Positions 2,420 to 45,120 of a DNA stretch of 64,000 bases are shown in pieces (the first letter of the stretch is position 1; every line of letters begins with the position of its first letter). The translations under genes were made by a program, and so were the position numbers. The stretch comes from Kudoa neothunni (Eukaryota; Animalia; Cnidaria), in the NCBI GenBank assembly GCA_964304625.1, contig OZ199838.1, positions 16,475,469-16,539,468 of the forward strand. The letters run 5' to 3'. The notes below the pieces were generated by a model. It was not told where the DNA came from. It searched no databases and saw only the letters and a list, made by a program, of their open reading frames with translations.

Positions 2420-4259
2420 TCTTAAGCCGACTTTTTCTCACTTCCTAAAAGGCCGAAAGATTAACGGGGGGAGGTTGAATCAAATATGATCCCAATTCCT
2501 TATTCTGTAACAAGAGATAAAAGTCTCCACATTATCAACATCACCCATATCCTTGTTGTACATATGAAATTTGGGCTGTTCGGTCGTCATATTGCGCTTT
2601 TTGCCCTACAATAACATGTTACATGTATAATTGATTTAACAATAAGTGAAATGTTAAGAAAAGTAACAGGCTCCGTATCATTCCGTTAAATACAACTAAC
2701 ATCAATTCTGCAATCTAAGAAATATTTATGGTAATCTTGGTAGTTTTCCCTCATTAATGTCGGAATTGTCATTGGATAGCTTGACGTTCGGTTCATTCTT
2801 ACTGACCGGGTAGCATTAATATTTCTGTTCAATTCAACCAATAATTTGTGTGAGTTGAAAAAATGATCAAGGTAGGCATGACATATACCTCTATCCTTTG
2901 GCTCATCGACAAAATTTAGCATGACACTTCCACCTTGGCTAAGATTCTTGATGTATATTTCTATCTTATCTGTATATACATTGAAAATAAAAATATTTCC
3001 ATCAGAAGATGCTAAACCTCAATGTTTGAGACAGAAACGATCGGGATTATCCTTCATATACATTTTTCACGAATCATGACCAATATATGGGAGTATTCGA
3101 TCATCAATAGATAAGTTGTTGTGAAAATATCTAAATTTATTGAAATCTTAGTCAATCTTCCAATTATTGATTTCGTCTCGGACAGCTTATTATCCTTATC
3201 AAGCTTAAAATTATTATTAAAGCAAATGTACCTTTTCATCAATTATAATAATTTTTACTCCATAGATTTTTTTACAATTTCAACACCAGAATCCATCGAA
3301 GTTTCTCCATACAAATGCTGCTGAGATAATCAGTTGTATCTGGATAATAGTAAAATACCGATAAAAGATTTAAATTCTTTTATGGTTAAATGAAAAGTTT
3401 CATTATTTTTGTTGGTATAAATATTTGTTTCTTTAACAACATTCAGCATAAGATTATCAACTAAAATTTTGTTTACAATACTTCATAAAATTCATACCTA
3501 CTTGTTGAGGCACCATACATAATATCACGTTTATTTCGACTAACTGTTTGGCAATTAAAAATGAACTTTTAGACTGGGATATTTTAAACTATGTGGCACG
3601 ATAATTATCATTAATGGTTAATTTTTAATGTACGACAACGTCTCTACTTCAACGCATGCTTCTGGATGGTTACGATGTCAATGTTTTCATCATCTCTTGA
3701 AAAAAGGGTCATCTCCATCAGTCAAAATACCAATATTATCTTAAACCTCGAGGTAAAGTCAAAAACTCAATTATGTTTAAAATATCAACATTATTTTTTA
3801 TCATATTCATCAGAATCAATTATGTTTTCGTATGCCGTTGTGAAGGTGTACGCACTAGGTCAAATAACCGATTAATTGGAATTTAGCACGTCAATGGGTT
3901 TTCGTTTCCTTTTCGGCACTGTACTATATTGCTTATATTTCTTGACCCCTGTAACGGTTTGACCTATTTTGAAAAAATATTATTTATCTTACTTTGTTAA
4001 ATTATAATTCAGATTGAGAATTTTTAATTTCTTATTTCTAAGAAATTACTGTTCTATTACTACCTCAGTATACCATAATTACTATATAATACACAATCTC
4101 AGAGATATAAATTCATAATTGTAATTTAATTTTTAATTAAATTTAAAATGAATTGATACATTATAAATTACGATATAATACTCATTGACGAATTATTAAA
4201 GTTCTTAAAGATGCAACAATGAGGGATCGAAAAAGGAACGAAAACCCGGAATGGGTTAA
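2420..4259 (-). mobile_element. Decayed piggyBac (PGBD-like) transposon
   Basis: Minus-strand fragments KSFIGILLLS, RYICFNNN..DKDNKLS, YLDHFFNSHKLL, NAT.SVRMNR and MGDVDNVE. It ends GGG-TTAA at 4253-4259, with an internal inverted repeat (3896-3915 vs 4228-4248). Confidence 0.7.
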
Positions 4260-4523
4260 TGTAAAAGGCACACCATAAACTTTCCTGGGATAAGAGTACG
4301 CGGATAGTGCTGGCCAAAGAATTGTCGCGAAACTGGGAATTGACCTAGAAAATAGTGGAAAAAGAAATCAAATATCAAAATTACATTATTTGTTGATTTT
4401 TGTAATATTATAAAATCATTAAAATAACATTTAATTATACTGAATAGAAATTATGTGCCAATATAACTTATTTTAGTTATATAAGAAAATTTCTAGAGTC
4501 ACCAAGTATCAACGAATTCGATT

Positions 4524-6125
4524 GATAGTGGCTATTTTCATGGGAATGAATAATTCCTCCGTTATAGACGATATTTCAAATCTGATTTCATATTTAAATT
4601 TAGCTATTTTTAATCTAATTTTTTATGTAAACATTGTTTGAAAATTTAAATAATAAAAGTTCAACATTTTGTCTGCCCTATTTACACACCGTTCAATAAG
4701 TATATTCACATTTTTGAGTTTAATATTATGTAATATAAACATTATAGTTGAAATGAAATGTAAACATATCTAATGATGGTTAGAAATCTCTAGTTTAATA
4801 CGTCTCAACGCGCGTAGTTTAACTTAGAATAAGTCATTTCCAATCATTTACGAAACATGTACGTTTCTTTCTGAACATTTTTTAATATAAATTTAACAAA
4901 ATTGTCGTTAATACATGGATATTCATTGGATTCGAAATATTTTACATCGATGTAAACCACTTTTCATATATATCTATAAGATTATACCATAATTTCGGGG
5001 AATTTTCGTTGTTTTGTCCCTACAAATGTATTTAATTTAATCAAAAGTATGAGAATGGTTCCTATTCATGAATACAGAAGCTATAAATGCAGGAACCTAT
5101 GGGTTTAAATTTAAGAGTAAACCTATACTTCTTGATTTAAACTAATTTATCAATTTTTAACAAGCAGGGTGATTCTAAATTTTCTGCATTAACTCCTCTG
5201 GTATCGTCTCGATGGGTAAATTTATAAAATGTAAATTTTTAATGGTGATTTTTGGGGGTAAATTTGTTTGATTTTTGTAAAGCGATCCAACGAAAAAATG
5301 TAGTAAGTATTATAATAAACAATGTTGGAGTTAATATAACGGTTAATTCGTCCTTGAGCATTTTGAATTGTTCCGAAAAATTTCATTTGAGGATTGTAAA
5401 CATTTGTTTCCTGATACTGAGGGATGTGTAATTTTTATAGTTCAGAAAAATCAATTTTCACTCCAATGAAGAATTGATCAACTTATCCACCCGCCATGGT
5501 TGTTTAGCTGTCCGCCCCAAAAATTTCTCAAAAATAACCACATTTTAAATTTTAACAGTACAATAATATTTTTTAATAAAAGGTATAAGTTTGAGCAAAT
5601 AAATTTAAAAGCGCTTCATAGGAAGCAAGAATGACACCACTTTTCAAACTAATTCCATGCAATTGGTATTTTATATCTTACACAAGATTAAATTTCTCTT
5701 CTCCAACTGAATATAATATATAAACTTGTTCTACAGATTTCAGTTATTTCAAAGTTCTTTAATATTTAGAAATAATCTCACGAAAAAGAACGCCCCACAA
5801 CCAAATAGGATTAACGCGCATATTCGGACGTGGTGGGTGACACAAGAATGCACGAACAGAGAAGTTCATATTTATTAGAATACGTTTTTACTTTTAATTT
5901 AAACTAAAAAGTTCATATTACACAATATTAAGCTAAAAAACGTGGGTGTACTTAATGAACAGTGTAAATAGAGCAAACAAAATGTTGAATTTTTATTCTT
6001 TAAATTTTCAAACAATCATCGTATAAAAAATTAGATTAAAAATAGCTAAATTCAAATATGAAATCAGATTTAAAATATCGTCTATAACGGAGGAATCATT
6101 CATTTCCACGAAAATAGCTACTGTC
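4524..6125. mobile_element. Non-autonomous Mutator/MULE-like element, long TIRs, 9-bp TSD
   Basis: Imperfect TIRs of at least ~180 bp (GATAGTGGCTATTTTC.. / ..GAAAATAGCTACTGTC), flanked by AATTCGATT (4515-4523) and AATTCAATA (6126-6134). The paralogous empty site has a single AATTCAATT at 15213-15221. Confidence 0.85.
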
Positions 6126-6329
6126 AATTCAATAACAAAACAAGTTACCTTAAATGCTTTCGAAAATGTTAACAACCATCAACTTAAATTGATAACTCGT
6201 TATTTTTAATTCTTATGATAAAAAATATTAATTATCTCTGTACGTGTATGCTAGGAAAAATTAATTTAAAAATATAAAATTTGCAATTTTTTAATCATAT
6301 GAATATGTCTAAAATTGTATTTATTGACG

Positions 6330-6415: not shown

Positions 6416-9356
6416 ATGAAATCTCAATTAGTCTCGGTTAGTTTGCTAATTGCATTTTCATGTAATTTAATTACATTATTTACATTATTAATTTCTTGAA
6501 GATATTAATATAAATACCGCTGCTGAAGAGAAAACAGCAGTCCAAACTTCTACAAAAATACTTTCGTACGACATTGTAGACGGCAAAGTTCAATTAGTTT
6601 TGACTGGGTCAGATTATGTTACAAGTACGAAAAAATGCCTCATAAAAAAGGAGAACGATGATGGAAATGGATTTGGTCAGATGAGTACTTGTGCAAGCAG
6701 CACTGAAACAGGCAAATGTGTACGTGCTTGTAAAGGAGATGACAACAAAATTGAGTTTAATGTGCTTTCACCCAGAACGAAATTTATTTATGTCTTTTCT
6801 GGGATGGAACCCGAGTCAGTAAAAGGAAAAGATAAAGGAGGGGATGTTTTTGGACTTGCTATTCGTAATTTAAATAAAATTATTCTTTTTTAATTGAAAA
6901 TAGCGCTTTTGGTGAATCCATCAATAACAGTGTCCATAGATACTAATACGAAAAAATTAAAATTGGCAGCCAAGACATGTGAAAGAGTTGACTGTCCCAT
7001 TTTTTATAAAGGTATTCAATATGTGGCCGGTACAGTAGGAGCAAACTGCGATTCTGATAATAGCAACAACCAAGTTGATTTTGACCTTATGATTCCTCAT
7101 TATGAGATGATATGCACGAATTACCCCAGCTTCTTCTATCAAATGCCAAATTCGTATATGAAAGAAAATATTGACATATACAAACCACAATACTACGTTA
7201 CCTACAAGAAAGGTGACACTGATAAGAAAAATTATATCTTAAAATTCACCAACTCATTTCCTTCCGAAATATGTTTATTCAGTATTAAGGATGCTTCAAG
7301 TGCTTCTGAAGGGCCTACGAAGATATACACATCAATGTGCGGAGGAGGAACTGATAAAAATTGTTTTGCACCTTGCGATACTGTTGAATTAACACTAGCT
7401 GAGTCTAAACCAATCGTCGAAATATTAATTCAGACTAGATATCACGATTTAAAAGAAAGCAATGGGAAAATTGAGGGTTATGCAGGAAAAAAATATGGTA
7501 TGATTTTTATTGACAAAATTAAGATATTCATTTATTATAGTTATCGAAGAGCCTGCCGCTCCGAATACACTTTTTAGTGCACAAACAGATGTAGGGATTA
7601 CGCTTAGCCCTTCTACATACAAATCAGGCACCAGTTCAGTAAAGTTTAGTTCGTGCGCTTTGAAGTATTTCCCTGCAGATAAAATCAGGAAAGTCGAAGG
7701 AGTAATTCCAAATTGCCAAACCAGTGGGGCTTGCGGAGAAGATTGTTCAACACCTTCTGTTATAGTGGGGCTGACTGCAGGGAAAGCATACATGATTGAG
7801 ATCACTCCAGAAAGCATAAATAATCATGAAAATTTTAAAGAATACCTGTTTTTCAGAACAAGTAAGGAATATATTCATAACACTCATTAAATTATTTTTA
7901 GAAGAATCTGGTACATTAAACTTCGCCGACACAGCACCCACACCAACCGACGTGACTGCTGCAATTAAAGCGGTTGCTGGTGACGTTGGATCAGCAACAA
8001 CTGAACCGACCTGTTCCTATTACGTCAGTATAAAAGATAAAAACACGTTCGTAGAAGCAGAATGTGAAGACAGCAATCCATGTAGAGGATTTTGTAAAGA
8101 CACCAAGAAGTTGATAAATCTAAACCCTAAAACAAACTACGATATTAAAGTTATTTCACACAAAGACTATGGAATCAAAATATTTAAAAATATTCCAACT
8201 AGTAAAAAAATTTGAATATAACCTAATATAAATTATATTTGTTAGCTTGGTCAACCATGACTCTTTCCCATAAATTCCTGGATAAAGGGTTTAAAGTGGT
8301 TGGAACTTTGACATCCGTTTATCCACAAGCAACATGTCACTATAAAATAAGAGAAAAAGACGGAGAGACTCTAAAAGATGTTTATTCCTGTCCAGAAGTT
8401 GTTCCTCCGTCGCCGCCGGTCGGTCCAGTCACTGAAGATATTGCTGCTCCTCCTACACCTACTCAAACTCAGGAAACGACAGAATCTAGGCTGGTCAACG
8501 TTTCAAATTTGTCTGGAATAAAAATAGCAAGATCTGGCAATGTAGAAGCAACTGATGCCACACCCACTGAACCCACTACTACTCAGTCTAGGTTTCCACC
8601 TTGCAATATACCGCCACTTTGCAGAAATATAGTAATTAGTGATGGTTATGAGGCTAATAAAGAATACCAAGTATTGGTGACGGCTGTAGGCCGATCAGAG
8701 GAAGTTACAATCAATATTCCTAAAAGTTCTATAACAAAATTAATATAGAAATTTTCTAAATTGTCATATAAATATAGATTCACTCCCAGAACTATCTCAG
8801 GATACAAACAAACAAATTACGGTAGTTATCGAGAGAGTAGGAGATACGTTAAAAATCACGTCATTGCTTCCAAAAGAAAAGGATGATAATTCAGTATGTC
8901 GATGGATACTGAGAGACATCACTGATGTTTCCCAACGAATAGTGAAAAAATGTGATTCCAGTAGAAGTAAAGTTTGCAAACTTCCAACTTGCAGATCATT
9001 CACTATTGAGGATGTAAGTGATACCAATGATTATCATTTAACACTTATTCACTCTCGAGATCCCAATGTTAAAGGTGTTGGAATAATAAAACGAGGTAAC
9101 TATTAATTAATAATAATATCAATTATTATTATTATTATAATTAATAATTTAGGAGAGACCTCCAATCAATCCAGGTACAATTTATATTTTAATGTTTAAT
9201 GTATTACATTTTTAGGGCGAGCACCTCAATGTATTAAATTTTGGGTTAATATGTTGGGATAAGTTTTCATTTAGGATTGTTGGAATCATTGTTCCAGTCG
9301 CTATTGTTATTATAGGAGTTGGATTTTACTTTGGCTATATGAAGAATAGAGGATAA
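6416..9356 (+). CDS. Cys-rich FN3-like multi-module type I membrane protein, copy 1 (846 aa, 10 exons)
   Basis: Exons 6416-6461, 6502-6864, 6904-7497, 7541-7861, 7902-8201, 8246-8725, 8778-9095, 9153-9174, 9216-9230 and 9275-9356 sum to 2541 nt (847 codons), with all introns GT-AG. N-terminus MKSQLVSVSLLIAFSY is signal-like; C-terminus is IVGIIVPVAIVIIGVGFYFGYM-KNRG*. Confidence 0.88.
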
Positions 9357-14581: not shown

Positions 14582-15500
14582 TAATTGGAATTTGGAACGT
14601 CAATGGGTTTTCGTCCCTTTTTCGGCACTATACTATATTGCTTATATTTCTTGACTCCCGCAACGGTTTGAACTATTTTGAAAAAATATTATTTATATAA
14701 CCTTTACAAATTATAATTTAGCTTGAGAATTTTTAATTTGTTATTTCTACGAAGTTACTGTTCTATTAGTACCTCAGTGTACCGTAATTACTATATAAGT
14801 ACATAATCTCAAAATATGTAAATTCATAATTGAAATTTAATTCTTAATTAAATTTAAAATGAATTAATAAATTATAGATTACGATATAAACTCATTGACG
14901 AATTATTAAAATTCTTAGAGAGGCATTGATGAGGGACCGAAAACCCCGAATGGGTTAATGTAAAAGGCACACAATAAACTTTCCTGGGAAAAGAATAAGC
15001 TGATAGTGCTGGTCCAAGAAATGTCGCAAAAATGGGAATTGGTCTAGAAAATAGTAGAAAAATAAGCCAAATATCGAAATTATATTATTTGTTGATATTT
15101 TAATATTATAAAATCATTAAAATCTCATTTAATTATAATGTATAGGAATTATATGCCTATATAATTTTTTTTAATTTTATAACAAAATTTTTAAGGTCAC
15201 CAAGTATCAACGAATTCAATTCTAAAACAAATAATTTTAGATGCTTTCGAAAATGTTAACAACCGTTAACTTAAATTGATAAATCCTAATTTTTAATTCT
15301 TAGGGTGAAAAATATTAATTATCTATGCATTTATCCCAGGGAAAATTCATTCGAAAAATAAAAATTTGTAATTTTTCAATCATATGAATATGTATAAAAT
15401 TGTATTTATTGATGTATTGAATCCTATCATTAGATTCATATGAATGATAATAATTGAATCAAATATGCAATATAATCTGATTTACTCTATGTATCACAAA

Positions 15501-18460
15501 ATGAAAACTCAGATATTCTCAGTTAGTTTATTGATTGTATTTTCATGTAATTCTATATATATATATATATATATACGTTTATTAATTTATTAAATTTGTT
15601 TAGTTATTAATATAAATAGTGCCGTTGAAAATAAACAAGCACCTCAAACTCCTACAAAAATACTTTCGTACGATATTGTAGGAGGAAAGGTTCAATTGGT
15701 TTTGACTGGGTCAGACTATATAACGGATTCAAAAAAATGTCTCATAAGAAAAGAGAAGGATGATGGAAATGGATTTGATCAGATACATCCCTGTGTAGGT
15801 AGCGATGAAACCAATGGGAGAGACAAATGCGTACGTGCTTGTGCAGGAAATGACAACACATTAGCATTTAATGTGCTTTCACCCAGAACAAAGTTTATCT
15901 ATGTATATTCCGGAGTGCAGGCTTCAGAAATTCTAGCCAAAAATAATGGCGGAGAGGTTTTTGGACTAGCTATTCGTAATTTAAACAAAATTATTCTTTT
16001 TTAATTTGAAGTAGCGCTCTTGGTGAATCCAAAAATCACGATATCCACAGATGCATCATCGAAAAAATTAACGCTTGCAGCCAAGACATGTAAAAATGTT
16101 GACTGTCCCATTTTTTATAAAGGTATTCAATACGCGACTGGTGCAGGAGGGGCTGCTTGTGAAACTGATAACACCGCCAACCAAGTTGACTTTGACCTTA
16201 TGATTCCTCACTACGAGATGATATGTACGAATTACCCAAGCTTCTTTTATCATATGCCAAATCCGTACATGAAAGAAAATATTGACATATACAAACCCCA
16301 ATATTACGTTACTCACAAAAATGTTGACACTAAGACAAATTATGTCCTGAAATTTACCAACTCATTTCCTTCCGAAATGTGTTTATTTAGTATTAAGGAT
16401 GCTTCAACTGATGCTAGGGAACCTACTAACGAATACGCATCAGTATGTGGAGGAGGAACCGATAAAAACTGTTACGCACCTTGTGATAATGTTGAATTAA
16501 CACTTACTGTTTCCAAACGAATCGTTGAAATATTAATTCAGACTAGACATCATAATTTAGATCAAAACAATGGAAACATTGGGGGCTATAAAGATAAAAA
16601 ATATGGTATTATTTTTATTAAGAAAATGTAGATATTTATTTATTATAGCTATCGATGAGCCTGAAGCCGCAAATACACTTTTTAGTACGCCAACAACTAT
16701 AGGGATTACACTTAACCTATCTGCATACAATACAGCTTCTGTCAGCCCAAAATTTGGTACATGTACTTTAAAGCATTTTCCTGCTGATAAAATCAGAAAG
16801 ACTCCAGAGGATGTTTTGCAATGCAACGATACCGATTCTTGTGAAAGTGTTTGTGCTACTCCTTCTACTATAAAGGGGCTGACTGCAGGGAAAGCATACA
16901 TAATTGAGATCACTCCGACAACCATCAGTAATCCAGAAAATTTTAAAGAATACTTGTTTTTCAGAACAAGTAAGGAATATATTCATAACACTCATTAAAT
17001 TATTTTTAGAAGAATCTGGTACATTAACCTTCGCCGACACAGCACCCACACCAACCGACGTGACTGCTGCAATTAAAGCGGTTGCTGGTGACGTTGGATC
17101 AGCAACAACTGAACCGACCTGTTCCTATTACGTCAGTATAAAAGATAAAAACACATTTGTAGAGGCAGAATGTGAAGACAGCAACCCATGTAGAGGATTT
17201 TGTAAAGACACCAAGAAGTTGATAAATCTAAACCCTAAAACAAACTACGATATTAAAGTTGTTTCACACAAAGACTATGGAATCAAAATATTTGAAAATA
17301 TTTCAACTAGTAACAAAATTTTAATTTAAGCTAATATAAATTATATTTGTTAGCTTGGTCAACCATGACTCTTTCCCATAGATTCCTAGATAAAGGGTTT
17401 AAAGTGGCTGGAACTTTGACATCCGTTTATCCACAAGCAATATGTCACTATAAAATAAGAGAAAAAGACGGAGAGACTCTACAAGATGTTTATTCCTGTC
17501 CAGCAGTTGTCCCTCCGTCGCCACCGGTCAGTCCAGCCATTGAAGATATTGTTGCTCCTCCTACACCTACTCAAACTCAGGAAACGACAGAATCTAGGCT
17601 GGTCAGCGTTTCAAATTTGTCTGGAATAAAAATAGCAAGAGCTGGCAATGTAGAAGCAACTGATGCCACACCCACTGAACCCACTACTACTCAGTCTAGG
17701 TTTCCACCTTGCAATATACCGCCACTTTGCAGAAATATAGTAATTAGTGATGGTTATGAGGCTAATAAAGAATACCAAGTATTGGTGACGGCTGTAGGCC
17801 GATCAGAGGAAGTTACAATCAATATTCCTAAAAGTAACATATAAAGGAATTAATATAGATATTTTCTAAATTGTCATATAAATATAGATTCACTCCCAGA
17901 ACCATCTCAAGATACAAACAAACAAATTACGGTAGTTATAGAGAGAGTAGGAGATACGTTAAAAATCACGTCATTGCTTCCAAAAGAAAAGGATGATAAT
18001 TCAGTATGTCGATGGATACTGAGAGACATCACTGATGTTTCTCAACGAATAGTGAAAAAATGTGATTCCAGTAGAAGTAAAGTTCGCAAACTTCCAACTT
18101 GCAGATCATTCACTATTGAGGATGTAAGTGATACCAATGATTATCATTTAACACTTATTCACTCCCGAGATCCCAATGTTAAAGGAATTGGAATAATAAA
18201 ACGAGGTAACTAACAATTAATAGTAATATTAATTATTATAATAATTAATAATTTAGGAGAGACCTCTAATCAATCCAGGTACAATTTATATTTTAATGTT
18301 TAATGTATTACATTTTTAGGGCGAGCACATCAATGTATTAAATTTTGAGTTGACATGTTGGAATAAGTTTTCATTTAGGATTGTTGGAATCATTGTTCCA
18401 GTCGCTATTGTTGTTGTAGGGGTTGGATTTTACTTTGGTTATATGAAGAATAGAGGATAA
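15501..18460 (+). CDS. Cys-rich FN3-like type I membrane protein, copy 2
   Basis: Same 10-exon structure as copy 1 (MKTQIFSVSLLIVFS..GFYFGYMKNRG*). Intron 1 contains a (TA)n tract. There is a Cys-to-Arg change at 18085-18087. Confidence 0.87.
15554..15575. repeat. (TA)11 microsatellite in intron 1 of copy 2
   Basis: Read directly from the sequence; absent from the other four copies. Confidence 0.9.
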
Positions 18461-22687: not shown

Positions 22688-25639
22688 ATGCAAACTCAGT
22701 TAGTCTCGGTTAGTTTATTGATTGCATTTGCATGTAATTTGTTTATATTGATTATTTTATTAAAATATTGTAGTTATTAATACAAATCCTACTACGGAAA
22801 GTAAACTAGCACCCCAAACTCCTACAAAAATACTTTCGTATGACATTGTTGAAAGTAAAGTGTTGTTGGTTTTGACCGGATCGGATTATGAAACGGACTC
22901 GAAAAAATGCCTCATAAGAAAAGAGAACGATAGTGGAAATGGATTCGATCAGATAAGCGATTGTGAGAATAGAGATGCACAGAGTGGGACAGACAAGTGT
23001 GTACGTGCTTGTTCAGGAAATGACAATAAAATAACGTTTAATGTGCTTTCACCAAGAACAAGATTTATCTATGTATATTCCGGAGCGCAAGCTTCAGATA
23101 TTCAAGCCAAAAATAATGGCGGAGAGGTTTTTGGACTTGCTATTCGTAATTTAAATAAAATTATTTATTTTCATTAATTAAAAATAGCGCTCTTGGTGAA
23201 TCCATCAATAACAGTGTCCATAGATACTAATACGAAAAAATTAACGCTTGCAGCCAAGACATGTAAAAAAGTTGCCTGTCCTATTGTTTATAAAGGTATT
23301 CAATACGCGGCCGGTACAATGGGAGACAATTGCGATTCTGGTAACAGCGCCAACCAAGTTGACTTTGACCTTATGATTCCTCATTATGAAATGATATGCA
23401 CAAATTATCCAAGCTTCTTTTATCATATGCCAAATCCGTACATGAAAGAAAATATTGACATATACAAACCCCAATATTACGTTACTCACAAAAATGTTGA
23501 CACTAAGACAAATTATGTCCTGAAATTTACCAATTCATTTCCTTCCGAAATTTGTTTATTCAGTATTAAGGATGCTTCAACTAATGCTGGAGAACCTACT
23601 AACGAATACGCATCCGTGTGTGGTGGAATAACGGGTAAAAAGTGTTATGCACCTTGTGACAATGTTGAATTAACACTTGCTGCGTTCAAACCAATCGTCG
23701 GAATATTAATTCAGACTAGATATCATAATTTAGATACAAGCATTAACAGCATTGAGGGCTATAAAGAGAAAAAATATGGTATTGTTTTTTAAAGTAAATG
23801 TATCTATTCATTTATTATAGCTATCGAAGAGCTTGCCGCTCCGAATACACTTTTCAGTGCGGAAACACCTGTGGGAATTACACTTAACCCCTCTGCATAC
23901 AACTCAGCCACCGGTACCGATTCAGTAAAGTTTGGTACATGTGCTTTAAAGCATTTTCCTGCCGATAAAATCCGAAAAGATGGAGGAGAAACCACTAAAT
24001 GCAACAATAATCAGGCCTGTGGAGAGGTTTGTGAAACAGCGTCTGTTATACAGCAGTTGACTGCGGGGAAAGCATACATAATTGAGATCACTCCTACAAC
24101 CATAACTGGTCACACAGATTTTAAAGAATACCTGTATTTCAGAACACGTAAGTAATATATTCATTTCACTTATTAAATTATTCTTAGAAGAATCTGGCAC
24201 GTTAAAATTCACTGACGCAGCACCTTCAGCAACTGACGTGACTGCTGCAATTAAAGCGGTTGATGGTGACGTTGGATCAGCAACAACTGAACCGACCTGT
24301 TCCTATTACGTCAGTATAAAAGATAAAAACACGTTCGTAGAAGCAGAATGTGAAGACAGCAATCCATGTAGAGGATTTTGTAAAGACACCAAGAAGTTGA
24401 TAAATCTAAACCCTAAAACAAACTACGATATTAAAGTTGTTTCACACAAAGACTATGGAATCAAAATATTTGAAAATATTTCAACTAGTAAAATAATTTA
24501 AATTTAAGCTAATATAAAATATATTTGTTAGCTTGGTCAACCATGACTCTTTCCCATAGATTCCTAGATAAAGGGTTTAAAGTGGCTGGAACTTTGACAT
24601 CCGTTTATCCACAAGCAACATGTCATTATAAAATAAGAGAAAAAGACGGAGAGACTCTAAAAGATGTTTATTCCTGTCCAGCAGTTGTCCCTCCGTCGCC
24701 GCCGGTCAGTCCAGTCACTGAAGATATTGCTGCTCCTCCTCCTACATCTACTCAAACTGAGGTAGCGCAAGAATCTAGGCTGGTCAGCGTTTCAAATTTG
24801 TCTGGAATAAAAATAGCAAGAGCAAGTAATGCAGAAGAAGAGAATTCGACATCCACTGAACCCGCCATTACTCAATCTATGTTTCCACCATGTAGCAAAC
24901 CACCACTCTGTAGCAATATAATAATTAGTGATGGTTATGAGGCTAATAAAGAATACCAAGTATTGGCGACGGCTGTAGGTCGTTCAGAGGAAGTTACAAT
25001 CGATATTCCTAAAAGTACTATAACAAAATTAATATAGATATTTTCTAAATTGTCATATAAATATAGATTCACTCCCAGAACCATCTCAAGATACAAACAA
25101 ACAAATTACGGTAGTTATAGAGAGAGTAGGAGATACGTTAAAAATCACGTCATTGCTTCCAAAAGAAAAGGATGATAATTCAGTATGTCGATGGATACTG
25201 AGAGACATCACTGATGTTTCTCAACGAATAGTGAAAAAATGTGATTCCAGTAGAAGTAAAGTTTGCAAACTTCCAACTTGCAGATCATTCACTATTGAGG
25301 ATGTAAGTGATACCAATGATTATCATTTAACACTTATTCACTCCCGAGATCCCAATGTTAAAGGAATTGGAATAATAAAACGAGGTAACTAACAATTAAT
25401 AGTAATATTAATTATTATTATAATTAATAATTTAGGAGAAACTTCGAATCAATCCAGGTAAAACAAATAAAATAATGTTTAATGTAATGTATTTCTAGGG
25501 CGAGCACCTCAATGTATTAAATTTTGAGTTGATATGTTGGAATAAGTTTTCATTTAGGATTGTTGGAATCATTGTTCCAGTCGCTATTGTTATTGTAGGG
25601 GTTGGATTTTACTTTGGTTATATGAAGAATAAAGGATAA
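22688..25639 (+). CDS. Cys-rich FN3-like type I membrane protein, copy 3
   Basis: Same exon structure (MQTQLVSVSLLIAFA..GFYFGYMKNKG*); ORF-track exons run 22860-25392. Confidence 0.87.
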
Positions 25640-34911: not shown

Positions 34912-37858
34912 ATGAAAACTCAGTTAGTCACAGTTAGTTTATTAATTGCATTTTCATGTAGTTTATTTACATTATTTATTTTATTAATTTCTTGTAGATA
35001 TTAATATAAATACCGCTGCTGAAAATAATCCAACAGCCCAAGCTCCTACAAAAATACTTTCGTACGACATTGTAGGAGGAAAGGTTCAATTGGTTTTGAC
35101 TGGGTCAGATTATGTAACGGATTCAAAAAAATGTCTCATAAGAAAGGAGAAGAATGATGGAAATGGATTTGATCAGATAAGTACTTGTATAAGCAGCACT
35201 GAAGAAACAGGAAAATGTGTACGTGATTGTGCAGGAAATGACAACACAATAGCTTTTGATGTGCTTTCACCTAGAACAAAATTTATTTATGTTTTTTCTG
35301 GAGCGAGTACTGAAACAATAAAAAATAGTAATACTGGTGGGGATGTTTATGGACTTGCTATTCGTAATTCAAATAAAATTATTCATTTTCTTTAATGAAA
35401 ATTAGCTCTATTGGTGAATCCAAAAATCACAATATCGATTGATGCTACTTTGAAACAATTAACGCTTGCAGCTAAAACTTGTCCAAAAGTTGCCTGTCCC
35501 ATTTTTTATAAAGGTATTCAATACGCGACTGGAGCAGTAGGGACTGCTTGCGATTCTGATAACAGCAATAACAAAGTTGATTTTGACCTTATGATTCCTC
35601 ATTATGAAATGATATGCACAAATTACCCTAGCTTCTTTTATCATATGCCAAATCCGTACATGAAAGAAAATATTGACATATACAAACCCCAATACTACGT
35701 TACTTACAAGAAAGGTGACACTGAAAAGAAAAAATATATTCTAAACTTCACCAACTCATTCCCTTCCGAAATTTGTTTATTCAGTATTAAAGACGCTTCG
35801 AGTGCTGCTACAGGATCTACAAAGAATTATGCATCAGTGTGCGGAGGAGGAACTGACAAAAAGTGTTTTGCACCTTGTGATACTGTTGAATTAACACTGG
35901 CTGAGTCTAAACCAATCGTCGAAATATTAATTCAGACCAGATATCATAATTTAGATACAAGCATTAGCAGCATTGAGGGCTTTAAAGGGAAAAAATATGG
36001 TATTATTTCTATTAAGAAGACGTAGCTATTCATTTATTATAGCTATCCAAGAGAATGACGCTACGAATACACTTTTTAGTACACAAACGAATGTAGGGAT
36101 TACACTTAACCCCTCTGCATACAATTCAGCATCTACCGGACCAAAATTCACCACATGTTCATTAAATCATTTTCCTGCTGACAAAATCAGGAAAACCAAT
36201 GGAGAAACAACAAATTGCCAACCCAGTCAAGCTTGCACTCAGACTTGTGCAACACCTTCGGTTATACAAGGGCTGGACGCAGGAAAAGCTTACATAATTG
36301 AGATTACTCCGGCATCTATAGCTGATCACACGGATTTTAAAGAATACCTGTTTTTCAGAACAAGTAAATAATATTCATGTCGTTTATTTAATTATTCTTA
36401 GAAAAATCAGATGGATCAAACTTCGTCGACACAGCACCCACACCAACCGACGTGACTGCTGCAATTAAAGCGATTGATGGTGACGTTGGATCAGCAACAA
36501 CTGAACCGACCTGTTCCTATTACGTCAGTATAATAGATAAAAACACATTCGTCGAAGCCGAATGTGAAGACAGCAATCCATGTAGAGGATTTTGTAAAGA
36601 CACCAAGAAGTTGATAAATCTAAACCCTAAAACAAACTATGATATTAAAGTTATTTCACACAAAGACTATGGAATCAAAATATTCAAAAATATTTCAACT
36701 AGTAAAATAATTTTAATTTAAGCTAATATAAATTATATTCTTTAGCTTGGTCAACCATGACCCTTTCCCAAAGATTCCTAGATAAAGGGTTTAAAGTGGC
36801 TGGAACTTTGACATCCGTTTATCCACAAGCAATATGTCACTATAAAATAAGAGAAAAAGACGGAGAGACTCTACAAGATGTTTATTCCTGTCCAGCAGTT
36901 GTCCCTCCGCCGCCGCCGGTCAGTCCAGCCATTGAAAATATTTCTGCTCCTCCTTCACCTACTCAAACTCAGGAAACGACAGAATCTAGGCTGGTCAGCG
37001 TTTCAAATTTGTCTGGAATAAAAATAGCAAGAACTGGCAATGTAGAAGCAACTGATGCCACACCCACTGAACCCGCCATTACTCAATCTATGTTTCCACC
37101 ATGTAGCAAACCACCACTCTGCAGCAATATAATAATTAGTGATGGTTATGAGGCTAATAAAGAATATCAAGTATTGGTGACGGCTGTAGACCGATCAGAG
37201 GAAGTTACAATCAATATTCCTAAAAGTAACATATAAAGGAATTAATATTGATATTTTCTAAATTGTCATATAAATATAGATTCACTCCCAGAACTATCTC
37301 AGGATACAAACAAACAAATTACGGTAGTTATCGAGAGAGTAGGAGATACGTTAAAAATCACGTCATTGCTTCCAAAAGAAAAGGATGATAATTCAGTATG
37401 TCGATGGATACTGAGAGACATCACTGATGTTTCCCAACGAATAGTGAAAAAATGTGAATCGAGTAGAAGTAAAGTTTGCAGACTTCCAACTTGCAGATCA
37501 TTCACTATTGAGGATGTAAGTGATACCAATGATTATCATTTAACACTTATTCACTCCCGAGATCCCAATGTTAAAGGAATTGGAATAATAAAACGAGGTA
37601 ACTAACAATTAATAGTAATATTAATTATTATTATTATTATAATTAATAATTTAGGAGAAACTTCGAATCAATCCAGGTAAAACTAATAAAATAATGTTTA
37701 ATGTAATATATTTCTAGGGCGAGCACCTCAATGTATTAAATTTTGAGTTGATATGTTGGAATAAGTTTTCATTTAGGATTGTTGGAATCATTGTTCCAGT
37801 CGCTATTGTTATTGTAGGGGTTGGATTTTACTTTGGTTATATGAAGAATAAAGGATAA
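34912..37858 (+). CDS. Cys-rich FN3-like type I membrane protein, copy 4
   Basis: Same exon structure (MKTQLVTVSLLIAFSY..GFYFGYMKNKG*). Confidence 0.87.
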
Positions 37859-42159: not shown

Positions 42160-45120
42160 ATGCAAACTCAATTAGTCTCGGTTAGTTTATTGATTGCATT
42201 TGCATGTAATTTGTTTATATTGATTATTTTATTAAATTCTTGTAGTTATTAATACAAATCCTACTACGGAAAATAAACTAGCACCCCAAACTCCTACAAA
42301 AATACTTTCGTATGACATTGTTGAAAGTAAAGTGTTGTTGGTTTTGACCGGATCGGATTATGAAACGGACTCGAAAAAATGCCTCATAAGAAAAGAGAAC
42401 GATAGTGGAAATGGATTTGATCACGTAAGTACATGCGAGAATAGAGATACACAGGTTGAGACAGGCAAGTGTGTACGTGCTTGTGCAGGAAATGACAACA
42501 CATTAGCGTTTAATGTGCTTTCACCCAGAACAAAGTTTATCTATGTATATTCCGGAACAGATGCCGCACAAATTCAAAATAGTAATAACGGTGGGGATGT
42601 TTTTGGACTTGCTATTCGTAATTTAAATAAAATTATTCTTTTTTAATTGAAAATAGCGCTTTTGGTGAATCCATCAATAACAGTGTCCATAGATACTAAT
42701 ACGAAAAAATTAAAATTGGCAGCCAAGACATGTAAAAGTGTTGAATGTCCCATTTTTTATAAAGGTATTCAATACGCGGCCGGTACAGTAGGGACTGCTT
42801 GCGATTCTGAGAACAACGATAACAAAGTTGATTTTGACCTTATGATTCCCCACTACGAGATAATATGTGCGAATTACCCAAGCTTCTTCTACCAAATGCC
42901 AAATCCATATATGAAAAAAAATATCGACATATACAGACCCCAATACTACGTTACTTACAAAAAAGATGACGCTGATAAGAAAAATTATATCCTAAAATTC
43001 ACCAACTCATTTCCTTCCGAAATATGTTTATTCAGTATTAAAGACGCTTCGAGTGCTGCTACAGGATCTACAAAGAATTATGCATCAGTGTGCGGAGGAG
43101 GAACTGATAAAAAGTGTTTTGCACCTTGTGATACTGTTGAATTAACACTAGCTGAGTCTAAACCAATCGTCGAAATATTAATTCAGACTAGATATCATAA
43201 TTTAGATACAAGCATTACCAGCATTGAGGGCTATAAAGAGAAAAAATATGGTATTGTTTTTTAAAGAAAATGTATCTATTCATTTATTATAGCTATCGAA
43301 GAGACTGACGCTACGAATACACTTTTTAGTACACAAACGGATGTAGGGATTACACTCAACCCTTCTCCATACAACACAGCCACCGGTACCAATTCATTAA
43401 AGTTTGTTACGTGTGATTTAAAGCATTTTCCTGCCGATAAAATCAGAAAGACTACAGGGGATGTTTTGCAATGCAGCGATAATAACTCTTGTGGGCAGGC
43501 TTGTGAAACACCTTCTGTTATACGGCAGTTGACTGCGGGGAAAGCATATATAATTGAGATTACGCCAACAGCCATAGCTGATCACACAGATTTTAAAGAA
43601 TACCTGTTTTTCAGAACAAGTAAGGAATATATTCATAACACTTATTAAATTATTCTTAGAAGAATCTGATTCATCAAACTTCGCCGACACAGCACCCACA
43701 GCAACCGACGTGACTGCTGCAATTAAAGCGGTTGCTGGTGACGTGTTAAAAACAGACGCAACTGAACCGACTTGTTCATATTACGTCAGTATAGTAGATA
43801 AAAACACATTCGTCGAAGCCGAATGTGAAGACAGCAACCCATGTAGAGGATTCTGTAAAGATACTAAGAAATTGATAAATCTAAACCCCAAAACATACTA
43901 TGATATTAAAGTTGTTTCACATAAAAACTATGGAATCAAAATATTTAAAAATATTCAAACTAGTAAAAAAAATTTTAATTTAAGCTATTATAAATTATTT
44001 TCGTTAGCTTGGTCAACCATGACCCTATCCCAAAGATTCCTAGATAAAGGGTTTAAAGTGGCTGGAACTTTGACATCCGTTTATCCACAAGCAACATGTC
44101 ACTATAAAATAAGAGAAAAAAACGGAGAGACTCTAAAAGATGTTTATTCCTGTCCAGAAGTTGTCCCTCCGCCGCCGTCTGTCAGTCCAGCCACTGAAGA
44201 TATTTCTGATGCTCCTCCTTCACCTACTCAAACTCAGGAAACGATAGAATCAAGGCCGGTCAGCGTTTCAAGATTGCCTGGAATAAAAATAGCAAGAACT
44301 GGTAATATAGAAGCAACTGATGCCACACCCACCGAATCCACTACTACTCAATCTAAGTTTCCACCATGTAGCAAACCACCACTCTGCAGCAATATAATAA
44401 TTAGTGATGGTTATGAGGCTAATAAAGAATACCAAGTATTGGTAACGGCTGTAGGCCGATCAGAGGAAGTTACAATCAATATTCCTAAAAGTAATATATA
44501 AAGGAATTAATATAGATATTTTCTAAATTGTCATATAAATATAGATTCACTCCCAGAACCATCTCAAGATACAAACAAACAAATTATGGTAGTTATTGAG
44601 AGAGTAGGTGATACGTTAAAAATCACGTCATTGCTTCCTAAAGAAAAGGATGATAATTCAGTATGTCGATGGATACTGAGAGACATCACTGATGTTTCTC
44701 AACGAATAGTGAAAAAATGTGATTCCAGTAGAAGTAAAGTTTGCAGACTTCCAACTTGCAGATCATTCACTATTGAGGATGTAAGTGATACCAATGATTA
44801 TCATTTAACGCTTATTCACTCCCGAGATTCCAATGTTAAAGGAATTGGAATAATAAAACGAGGTGACTAACAATTAATAATAATATCAATTATTATTATT
44901 ATAATTAATAATTTAGGAGAGACCTCTAATCAATCCAGGTAAAATTAATATTTTAATATTTAATGTATTATATTCTTAGGGCGAGCACCTCAATGTATTA
45001 AACTTTGAGTTGATATGTTGGAATAAGTTTTCGTTTAGGATTGTTGGAATCATTGTTCCAGTCGCTATTGTTATTATAGGAGTTGGATTTTACTTTGGTT
45101 ATATGAAGAATAGAGGATAA
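42160..45120 (+). CDS. Cys-rich FN3-like type I membrane protein, copy 5
   Basis: Same exon structure (MQTQLVSVSLLIAFA..GFYFGYMKNRG*). Intron 5 (43963-44007, 45 nt) is in frame and stop-free. Confidence 0.87.

Follow-up and report, generated by a model that had tools for sequence, protein, structure and literature searches.

Germline-variable loops on predicted FN3-like modules of a tandem membrane-protein family in the fish parasite Kudoa neothunni, with omega at or below about one and frequent gene conversion

What keeps a few short loops so unlike between tandem gene copies that share most of their sequence? The question is raised by a window of 64,000 nt (the whole stretch of DNA analysed here) from the tuna parasite Kudoa neothunni, which contains five intact tandem paralogs of approximately 2.95 kb each, with a DNA identity of 84–91% among them. 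The original prediction described CDR-like hypervariable loops pinned between invariant cysteines and attributed them to diversifying selection on exposed loops. All searches, fold predictions, and codon analyses were run exon by exon.

The encoded product of every copy is a multi-exon type I membrane protein with a predicted signal peptide and transmembrane (TM) helix, and the sequence features point to a surface location of the family proteins. The start ATG and the stop TAA were checked in the window copies. There are 14 close copies in the genome, namely the five window copies and nine further ones; their splice sites are kept, the inter-module introns are all in phase 1, and the exon lengths are conserved across all 14. 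The family as a whole comprises at least 150 genes, with at least 150 scored matches each for module 1 and module 4, spaced approximately 1 kb and arranged in tandem arrays. It may account for a few percent of the repertoire of ~5,300 genes. An exhaustive HMM search and a cluster look-up returned no named relatives. The family is apparently undescribed, as neither the genome paper (PMC12239612) nor the literature searched mentions it; in the former, it was possibly masked as a repeat. The same paper reported very few parasite RNA reads (PMC12239612), and the locus was found in no RNA run. The features of the window copies are listed in Table 1.

Table 1. Positions of the five gene copies in the window and of the exons, modules, and variable loops of copy 1.
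Feature	Position	Strand	Remarks
Copy 1, gene	6416–9356	+	GT..AG introns of 39–57 nt
Exon 1	6416–6461	+	signal peptide
Exon 2, module 1	6502–6864	+	predicted FN3-like sandwich; four cysteines
Module-1 hypervariable loop	6690–6719	+	CASSTETGKC, between two invariant cysteines; in-frame length variation
Module-1 second variable patch (FG loop)	6804–6836	+	after YVFSG
Exon 3, modules 2–3	6904–7497	+	197 aa; near-invariant block VDFDLMIPHYEMICTNYPSFFY
Exon 4, module 4	7541–7861	+	predicted FN3-like; strands (exon-4 residues) A 11–15, B 18–21, C 39–44, E 72–75, F 82–88, G 100–105
Module-4 BC loop	7606–7653	+	variable patch; 2-codon indel between copies
Module-4 C'-E segment	7693–7746	+	VEGVIPNCQTSGACGEDC; hypervariable C-x5-C hairpin and C-x3-C
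Module-4 FG loop	7807–7833	+	variable patch
Exons 5–7	7902–9095	+	membrane-proximal modules, near-identical between copies
Exon 5	7902–8201	+	
Exon 6	8246–8725	+	
Exon 7	8778–9095	+	
Exon 8	9153–9174	+	
Exon 9	9216–9230	+	
Exon 10	9275–9356	+	TM helix, then 6-residue tail YMKNRG and stop (translated)
Copy 2	15501–18460	+	module-1 loop from 15792, module-4 loop from 16801
Copy 3	22688–25639	+	module-1 loop from 22962, module-4 loop from 23979
Copy 4	34912–37858	+	module-1 loop from 35186, module-4 loop from 36195
Copy 5	42160–45120	+	module-1 loop from 42434, module-4 loop from 43451

The peptides quoted in the original prediction are all present on the + strand of the window, and the variable loops of modules 1 and 4 are real in all five copies. 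Among the paralogs, the module-1 loop carries in-frame indels of 3–9 nt, and the second variable patch reported after YV(F/Y)SG corresponds to the FG loop. The cysteines remain invariant after the nine further close paralogs are added. The framework segments FPADKIRK, AGKAY, and VDFDLMIPHYE, which had been called constant or nearly so, are indeed found in 5/5 window copies, but across all copies the framework is only near-invariant, with the variants FPADK[I/L]R[K/P/T] and VDFDLMIP[H/Y]YE. The C-x5-C-x3-C sequence of module 4 is unique to each copy (12/12 intact copies). Nucleotide divergence has its maximum of 0.41 at 7680–7740 versus 0.05–0.10 in the 3' half of the gene, where the p-distance of exons 5–7 is 0.05–0.10 and that of the introns 0.03–0.09. 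The BC, C'-E, and FG loops reach an amino-acid entropy of 1.36 bits, compared with 0.56 in the other loops (Mann-Whitney p = 0.0035) and 0.31 in the strands (p = 2e-6). The variation is confined to these three loops; conservation extends over the strands and the AB, CC' (PADKIRK), and EF (GLTAGK) loops. The residues at the hypervariable positions are drawn from T, N, D, A, V, S, Q, E, G, P, and I alone; Y, W, and R are absent. Throughout 52 modules, the spacing between the second and third cysteines is 4–10 and that between the third and fourth always 3. C58 and C64 are missing jointly in one module and both present in the other 51, and disulfides C58–C64 and C38–C68 are likely.

Mis-assembled tandem repeats or freely drifting pseudogenes were also considered as a source of this variation. 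The assembly was built at low coverage (PMC12239612), and frameshifts occur in copies L005, L003, L004, and L009, those in L005 and L003 being +1 changes within homopolymers that resemble sequencing errors. However, the exons are open and the splice sites conserved in the five window copies and in most of the others, and the framework omega is 0.02–0.3. In addition, independent short-read contigs from the source sample match the loop of copy 1 with zero differences, and the 90–300 nt scale of the mosaic described below is far under the HiFi read length. This explanation is hardly credible and already largely refuted.

The AF2 models of the two variable modules form a seven-strand beta sandwich (A-B-E / C-C'-F-G) of ~90–100 residues. 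For module 4 (pLDDT 84.2, pTM 0.75), the top 50 structural matches in VIA-align are all FN3 domains (Z 7.2–8.5, 82–90 residues aligned), and the best Foldseek matches in the PDB are FN3 domains and monobodies, with TM scores of 0.53–0.59 and E values of only 0.02–0.1, so that more weight was placed on VIA-align. The matches of module 1 (pLDDT 76.9, pTM 0.70) have Z values of 5–7.1 and are mostly FN3 domains of cytokine receptors. Given these middling Z values, modules 1 and 4 are best regarded as FN3-like sandwiches at the level of the fold. No exon had a Pfam match above threshold; exon 4 did not match PF00041, and exon 5 reached 15.3 bits, below the cut-off of 25. The module profile matches multi-FN3 proteins with E values of 1e-26 to 1e-10 at profile positions ~50–96, and two of these proteins (P0002 and P0007) have 18 and 12 Pfam fn3 repeats, respectively. 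The profile-level likeness to canonical FN3 repeats consists of the E-F strand motif L..G..Y.h.h. In hhalign, modules 1 and 4 aligned with an E value of 0.2 over the C-x3-C and the E-F strands only, so that their putative homology is based on fold and pattern rather than on statistics. The ESM Atlas feature scores were 0.86–0.89 and served as leads only.

When the variable residues are placed on the predicted fold, they cluster in the BC, C'-E, and FG loops instead of being scattered. By FN3 topology these loops would lie at one pole, which suits the description "CDR-like". Of the phrase "exposed loops", the loop assignment is borne out by the models, while the exposure is suggested by the topology; the loops would then form the variable outer face of the protein.

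The codon analyses, meanwhile, left the claim of diversifying selection on the loops unsupported, as omega does not exceed 1 in the tests that use local dS or are robust to recombination. In the module-4 loop, pS (0.63–0.66) exceeds pN (0.40), a pattern that the original prediction itself had named as refuting such selection. The pairwise composite ML omega of this Cys loop, which is robust to recombination, is 0.33 (CI 0.17–0.62), or 0.55 without the cysteines; with region-specific synonymous rates, the omega of this loop is 0.5–0.7. Loop omega in a second array is 0.25–0.54. The pairwise ML omega of the module-1 Cys loop is 0.92 (CI 0.38–2.55). With region-specific synonymous rates this loop gave the sole value above 1, which is non-significant (omega 1.9, p = 0.058). 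Omega is 0.6–0.7 in the module-1 FG loop, 0.62–0.75 in the module-4 BC loop, and ~1 in the P/T-rich linker. Unsaturated independent close pairs, when pooled, have Nd 82.5 and Sd 31.5 and a pN/pS of 0.74; they show no excess of nonsynonymous changes, and the ratio does not differ from 1 (two-sided p = 0.14). Exon 3, with pN 0.03–0.04 and pS 0.47–0.69, has an omega of 0.02–0.05. The homologous Cys loop of module 5 is strongly constrained (omega 0.04–0.05), which indicates that the loop position is not inherently free of constraint and counts against a neutral reading of the loops. The surroundings of the module-4 loop have ~1.8–2 times the synonymous divergence of the rest of the exon, and synonymous diversity at invariant residues is 0.22–0.26 in exons 2–4 and 0.09–0.15 in exons 5–7. 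Introns, at 39–57 nt and mostly splice signal, were dropped as a neutral yardstick.

It should be noted that the standard site models gave the opposite impression. The M1a/M2a and M7/M8 comparisons rejected neutrality for exon 4 (p = 7e-6 and 6e-6) and exon 2 (p = 0.006 and 3e-4), and the high-omega sites lie within the Cys loops (60, 63, and 67 in module 4; 64–70 in module 1). This stands as a counterpoint to a neutral reading of the loops. M2a and M8, however, assume a single tree and a constant dS, and both assumptions are violated in this family; because recombination and uneven dS break them, we discounted the significance of these tests. M2a is equally significant in the mucin-like P/T-rich linker and in exon 3, and for module 4 of the second array the site models yielded no class under positive selection. 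What the site models call "positive selection" here is an artefact produced by recombination and uneven dS. FEL-like single-site tests gave seven sites with p < 0.05, which is about the number expected by chance, and the only site that stands out is alignment column 95 of exon 4 in the FG loop (beta > alpha, p = 0.004).

Recombination is frequent in the family. The nearest copy changes every 90–300 nt along the gene with many identical windows, and a PHI-like statistic was 0.485 versus 0.595 ± 0.004 in permutations (p < 0.001). Despite this pervasive conversion elsewhere, near-identity between copies is almost never seen in the loop windows; the half-loops themselves are mosaic and occasionally common to different copies.

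On balance, we lean towards the view that the hypervariable stretches are near-neutral exposed FN3-like loops left unlike while gene conversion homogenises the rest of the gene. The scaffold (the strands, the four cysteines, the CC' and EF loops, and the exon-3 core) would be held by strong purifying selection, while the BC, disulfide-stapled C'-E, and FG loops of modules 1 and 4, presumably the membrane-distal part, would tolerate nearly any small or polar residue as well as in-frame indels, and would therefore drift near the neutral rate. Gene conversion in frequent short tracts would homogenise the gene, above all its membrane-proximal half and the introns there. Since this conversion would leave the loops unerased, only now and then reshuffling half-loops among copies, each paralog would retain a private loop set.

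The same observations can be read as true diversifying selection, in which paralogs are selected for differing loops (antigenic diversity or a spread of ligands) and homogenising tracts are selectively removed. The raised local dS around the module-4 loops and the escape of the loops from homogenisation are both expected under selection against homogenisation. The private C-x5-C-x3-C of each copy, the intactness of the five window copies, the site-model results, and the module-1 omega of 1.9 fit this account as well, and so does one close pair (W2 versus L004) with seven nonsynonymous and no synonymous changes in the module-4 core loop. Against it stand the omega values and the module-4 excess of pS given above, the failings of the single-tree tests under strong recombination, the chance-level number of individual sites, and the lack of the Y, W, and R typical of binding paratopes. 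We regard such selection as somewhat unlikely, and weak or episodic diversifying selection on the loops as possible.

Another reading is programmed or somatic diversification, either by targeted hypermutation or by moving cassettes into an expression site through conversion, for which VSG/vlsE and antibody genes are the models. It would agree with the mosaic half-loops and with the high total substitution rate of the module-4 loop, which is ~5 times the framework value; the synonymous rate is raised too. It is very improbable, as every copy is a complete gene that has a signal peptide and a TM exon of its own and is not a silent cassette, the two members of a recent duplicate pair do not differ by a single nucleotide in either module and show no loop change, and the raised dS reaches beyond the variable codons into the conserved FPADK framework. 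The source-sample contigs have no alternative letters at 7309–7920, and no somatic loop variants (Ig/TCR/VLR or DGR-type) were seen in them, although this test is weak since contigs drop rare variants. Local hypermutation as such was ruled out by the raised dS in conserved framework codons together with the identical recent duplicates.

Antibody and TCR CDRs and lamprey VLRs resemble the Kudoa modules in that one pole of a conserved scaffold, be it a sandwich or a solenoid, bears hypervariable loops. Those receptors are somatically diversified and rich in Y/W/R paratope residues, whereas the Kudoa diversity is germline, lies between paralogs, and involves small polar residues only. A cnidarian system offers a further parallel. 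The Alr allorecognition complex of Hydractinia, as Huene and colleagues are said to have described in 2022, encodes type I membrane proteins from genes clustered in tandem; their beta-sandwich domains are reportedly difficult to detect from sequence, and variation is greatest in the membrane-distal one. The Kudoa family is likewise a tandem array of cnidarian type I membrane proteins with predicted beta sandwiches and a variable distal domain. In Alr, the domains are of the Ig-like type (V-set/I-set), the variation is allelic, and signalling tails follow, while the Kudoa modules best match FN3 and not V-set, the variation is seen between paralogs, and the tail has six residues.

Giardia VSP, Plasmodium rifin/stevor/var, and trypanosome VSG are, like the Kudoa family, large, clustered, recombining families of predicted surface proteins. 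Mosaic variants arising by recombination or gene conversion and a host with antibodies (here, a fish) are common to both sides. With Giardia VSPs, the Kudoa proteins also share a signal peptide, a variable cysteine-bearing ectodomain, a conserved TM helix, and a conserved tail of very few residues. The fold and the cysteine pattern differ, the Kudoa proteins not being CXXC-rich, and the Kudoa loops lack a supported dN/dS > 1. Kudoa plasmodia live within muscle fibres, and antibody pressure on them is therefore uncertain. VSP- and RIFIN-like genes were reported in the myxozoan Sphaerospora molnari, and the same source reports antigenic variation in myxozoans, the mechanism of which is unknown (bioRxiv 10.64898/2026.02.11.705288).

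The family of at least 150 genes might provide a myxozoan with its variable outer coat or its repertoire for host interaction, with disulfide-stapled FN3-like modules as the building blocks, top-pole loops that selection keeps different and gene conversion reshuffles, and only a subset expressed at a time. We consider this distinctly unlikely; if true, an animal parasite would have its own equivalent of the protozoan variant surface antigens. Spoiled fish flesh and, for some species, food poisoning are the practical consequences of Kudoa; the family readily suggests itself as a candidate for host interaction, diagnostics, or strain typing. The sober outcome matters too, as standard site-model positives were misleading here.

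The family would also be a natural case of FN3 loops serving as a variable surface. The predicted Kudoa modules share with FN3 (PF00041) and the monobodies/Adnectins the ~100-aa seven-strand sandwich, and their variation falls in the BC, C'-E/DE, and FG loops that are randomised in monobodies, although it is natural and lies between paralogs, not engineered. They differ in falling below the Pfam fn3 cut-off and in the stapled C-x4-10-C-x3-C insert that their four conserved cysteines would form between strands C' and E; to our knowledge, most FN3 domains have no disulfides. In exon 6, a P/T-rich insert of ~60 aa is located at the same C'-E loop position.

The five gene copies of the window (table) are tandem paralogs with 84–91% DNA identity, each consisting of ten exons. 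The first exon encodes the signal peptide MKSQLVSVSLLIAFS, and the six module exons are separated by introns of 39–57 nt, GT..AG and all in phase 1. In the published assembly of Kudoa neothunni, which comprises three chromosomes and a mitochondrial circle (40.2 Mb), the median intron is 49 nt (PMC12239612). The gene model includes two micro-exons, conserved at the same place in 14 of 14 copies; according to the predicted splicing, both would be required to reach the transmembrane exon in frame (9096–9274). The last exon encodes IVGIIVPVAIVIIGVGFYFGY-MKNRG-stop, and this sequence together with the signal-peptide exon predicts a type I membrane protein whose tail is six residues long. Outside the genes, the copies are mostly unalignable past ~115 nt on the upstream side and ~120 nt on the downstream side. 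In all searches and fold predictions, single exons were used.

Positions in the window of the gene copies, their analyzed segments, and the intergenic repeats
Feature	Position	Strand	Remark
Copy 1	6416–9356	+	Tandem paralog, gene span; carries the loops noted originally
Copy 2	15501–18460	+	Tandem paralog, gene span
Copy 3	22688–25639	+	Tandem paralog, gene span
Copy 4	34912–37858	+	Tandem paralog, gene span
Copy 5	42160–45120	+	Tandem paralog, gene span
Module-1 loop	6690–6719		Copy 1, exon 2
VDFDLMIPHYEMICTNYPSFFY block	7074–7140		Exon 3
Module-4 loop	7693–7746		Copy 1, exon 4
Module-6 insert (Pro/Thr/Ser/Glu-rich)	8395–8575		Exon 6
Micro-exon	9153–9174		22 nt
Micro-exon	9216–9230		15 nt
Repeat	3873–4523		Intergenic, flanks genes; recurs at 14582–15221 (86%)
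Repeat	4521–4764		Repeated inverted at 6128–5887, just upstream of copy 1
Intergenic repeats overall	3873–4764, 5887–6128, 14582–15221		

The original prediction described hypervariable loops pinned by invariant cysteines, and all of its peptides were found where it had placed them. Across 12–14 copies, the cysteines were invariant, the C-x5-C-x3-C of module 4 differed in every copy, and the length of the module-1 loop shifted by in-frame indels. The second variable patch predicted for module 1 was also recovered; of the two patches, one is the cysteine loop between C' and E and the other the FG loop. Nucleotide divergence peaked at 0.41 at 7680–7740 and was 0.26–0.29 in the module-1 patches and 0.05–0.10 in exons 5–7. 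It is unlikely that the loop variation is an artefact, as the short-read contigs of the source sample reproduced the loop of copy 1 exactly (contig depth 4–8 at this loop versus 50–130 over the paralog-shared 3' part).

The AlphaFold2 model of module 4 (pLDDT 84.2, pTM 0.75) showed the predicted strands A (11–15), B (18–21), C (39–44), E (72–75), F (82–88), and G (100–105). Its best Foldseek matches in the PDB were FN3 scaffolds (E 0.02–0.1, TM 0.53–0.59), and the best 50 matches of a Foldseek-independent structure search were all FN3 (Z 7.2–8.5, 82–90 residues, rmsd ~3 Å). Module 1 (pLDDT 76.9) gave a weaker result, matching the FN3 domains of class II cytokine receptors (Z 5–7.1). The exons scored under the threshold of Pfam fn3; meanwhile, the profile of the 52-sequence module-4 alignment (A1) found canonical multi-FN3 proteins, with E down to 1e-26, over the E–F strand region. 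Residues G18, C38, C68, G80, and T106 were invariant in A1, and C58 and C64 were present in 51 of the 52 sequences; the lone exception had neither, and this joint loss points to putative disulfides C58–C64 and C38–C68. The second and third cysteines were 4–10 residues apart, and the third and fourth always 3.

The mean column entropy of module 4 was high in the BC loop (1.17 bits), the C'-E cysteine segment (1.60), and the FG loop (1.20), and low in CC' (ADKIRK, 0.34), EF (GLTAGK, 0.54), and the strands (0.0–0.7). The top-pole loops exceeded both the bottom-pole loops (p 0.0035) and the strands (p 2e-6). In the FN3 topology, the BC, C'-E/DE, and FG loops lie at the same pole, beside the N-terminus. 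"CDR-like", as the loops had been called, therefore seems apt for their position in the modelled fold, while the exposure claimed with it would follow from the topology. The ten most variable positions of module 4 were occupied only by T, N, D, A, V, S, Q, E, G, P, and I, with no aromatic or basic residues, and this small/polar set resembles a tolerant surface rather than a binding paratope. The homologous loop of module 5 was strongly conserved (omega 0.05). At the C'-E position, where modules 1 and 4 are hypervariable, module 6 carries a Pro/Thr/Ser/Glu-rich, mucin-like insert of ~60 residues. Exon 3 (197 aa) had no family match. Its VDFDLMIPHYEMICTNYPSFFY block was almost invariant in protein (omega 0.02–0.05), yet its synonymous divergence exceeds that of every other part of the gene (pS up to 0.69); it is a predicted strongly selected core.

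The codon models used for the selection tests were our own implementation. The loops of most copy pairs were near saturation. Nei–Gojobori counts for the module-4 loop gave a pS of 0.63–0.66 and a pN of 0.40; with dS at or above dN, the very outcome that the original prediction had named as refuting it, the proposal of diversifying selection failed for the module-4 loop. Pairwise composite likelihood (GY94, F3x4 frequencies, kappa 2.5, bootstrap over codons), which is tree-free and therefore robust to recombination, gave an omega of 0.33 (95% CI 0.17–0.62) for the module-4 loop and 0.55 (0.29–1.53) for the same loop without Cys. The values were 0.92 (0.38–2.55) for the module-1 loop without Cys, 0.2–0.3 for the frameworks, and 1.04 for the P/T linker.

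The site models, run on exon trees, were significant in exon 4 (M1a/M2a, LRT 23.7, p 7e-6; M7/M8, p 6e-6), where omega was 4.2 for 7% of the sites (columns 60, 63, 67, 77, and 95), and in exon 2 (p 0.006 and 3e-4, respectively). Neutrality was rejected by M2a in exon 3, too (p 0.0014), and in the linker of exon 6 (p 3e-4), whose P/T insert evolves at omega ~1 and was flagged as 'positive'. With the synonymous rate free to vary by site or region, the module-4 loop had alpha 2–4, beta 1–2, and omega 0.5–0.7, the module-1 loop had omega 1.9 (p 0.058), beta was significantly above alpha in no 15-codon window anywhere, and single sites at p < 0.05 were as many as chance predicts. In an independent array of 11 copies (contig C2, 9.78–9.87 Mb), the same loops were variable. 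M2a brought no gain in module 4 of this array, where the loop omega was 0.25–0.54, significantly below 1; in module 1, M2a was significant (p 0.0015), but the regional omega was 0.38. Finally, phylogenetically independent close pairs, unsaturated at no more than 20% loop divergence, were pooled over ten loop sets. They showed no nonsynonymous excess (Nd 82.5 / 827 sites, Sd 31.5 / 235 sites; pN/pS 0.74; one-sided p 0.95, two-sided p 0.14).

The PHI-like four-gamete statistic was 0.485 versus 0.595 ± 0.004 in permutations, indicating that single-tree site models are unreliable in these genes. In 90-nt windows, the nearest relative of each copy switched from window to window, many distances being 0.00–0.02; in the loop windows (6686; 7586–7766), the nearest copy was usually 0.10–0.29 off. 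The half-loop TTGDVLQ was common to window copy W5 and the outside paralog L004 (W2 has the close variant TPEDVLQ), and TNGETT to W4 and the outside paralog L006. Each was attached to differing C-x5-C-x3-C segments, indicating independent assortment.

Divergence among the copies was 3–10% in exons 5–10 and their introns (7902–9356) and 14–25% in exons 2–4 (region 6416–7861), a pattern of strongly graded concerted evolution. Synonymous diversity at invariant residues was 0.22–0.26 in exons 2–4 and 0.15, 0.087, and 0.096 in exons 5–7, 2.5–3 times lower in the proximal than in the distal half. The introns followed the same trend; thus, the membrane-proximal half was homogenised more, or more recently. 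Synonymous diversity was raised further around the module-4 loops (model-free, 0.39 versus 0.22, p 0.05; model-based, p 6e-6). Since this rise reaches the conserved FPADK codons, an older, unconverted segment fits better than codon-targeted mutation.

The simplest account fitting everything is that the exposed loops would be loosely constrained on a strongly constrained FN3-like scaffold, that divergence in the distal modules would be old, and that patchy gene conversion would leave the loops unerased. Selection keeping the loops different between paralogs is possible; it would explain why the loops escape conversion and why dS is raised locally. Divergence-limited conversion explains both equally well, and no test gave an omega above 1, the 1.9 of the module-1 loop being non-significant (p 0.058).

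Clustered, recombining surface-protein families with variable exposed loops are well known; new here is a member of this kind, with a predicted surface location, that a cnidarian parasite builds from FN3-like, cysteine-stapled modules. We found no paper describing this family, and searches pairing myxozoans or Kudoa with this domain gave none containing 'fibronectin type III'. In the genome paper (PMC12239612), the words 'expanded', 'transmembrane', and 'orphan' do not occur, and 'tandem' refers to telomere repeats only. The VSP- and RIFIN-like families of Sphaerospora molnari, described in a preprint stating that the mechanism behind myxozoan antigenic variation is unknown (bioRxiv 10.64898/2026.02.11.705288), are unrelated to the Kudoa neothunni family.

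The searched genome (40.26 Mb, 4 contigs) contained 14 copies at ≥81% identity, 12 of them in a single cluster (C1, the contig of the window, 16.44–16.56 Mb); the comparison set comprised the five window copies and nine outside it. Translations of exons 4 and 2 each gave at least 150 scored matches in the genome (321 and 261 first-look candidates), paired ~1 kb apart as in the window gene. Since each query matched only its own module within the window, the number of matches corresponds to a number of genes, at least 150. A pair of adjacent family genes, 4.4 kb apart, was nucleotide-identical in both sampled modules (C2:9843853–9844164 versus 9848234–9848545; 9842827–9843174 versus 9847208–9847555); the pair is due either to tandem duplication in the very recent past or to duplication of a segment in the assembly. 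This identity between recently duplicated units and the exact copy 1 loop in source-sample contigs make somatic diversification of the loops unlikely.

The A1 profile also found exon-sized ORFs with the four-cysteine pattern, none of them named, in assemblies of other samples, so that the family reaches beyond the Kudoa neothunni genome. Two AT-rich contigs from such samples, L056 (ENA ERZ28624939 scaffold_9927) and L055 (Logan SRR33849685), encode the four-cysteine module. In L056, collinearity extends over exons 4–6 (42–47% amino-acid identity), and the contig presumably comes from another myxozoan. Among the paralogs outside the window, L005 (C1:16547459–16551001) has about ten +1 insertions over exons 3–8, most in homopolymer runs, and L003 has two of the same type; these frameshifts resemble errors of a low-coverage assembly rather than decay. 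The paralog L009 on C2 has 1–2-nt indels outside homopolymers and may be a real pseudogene.
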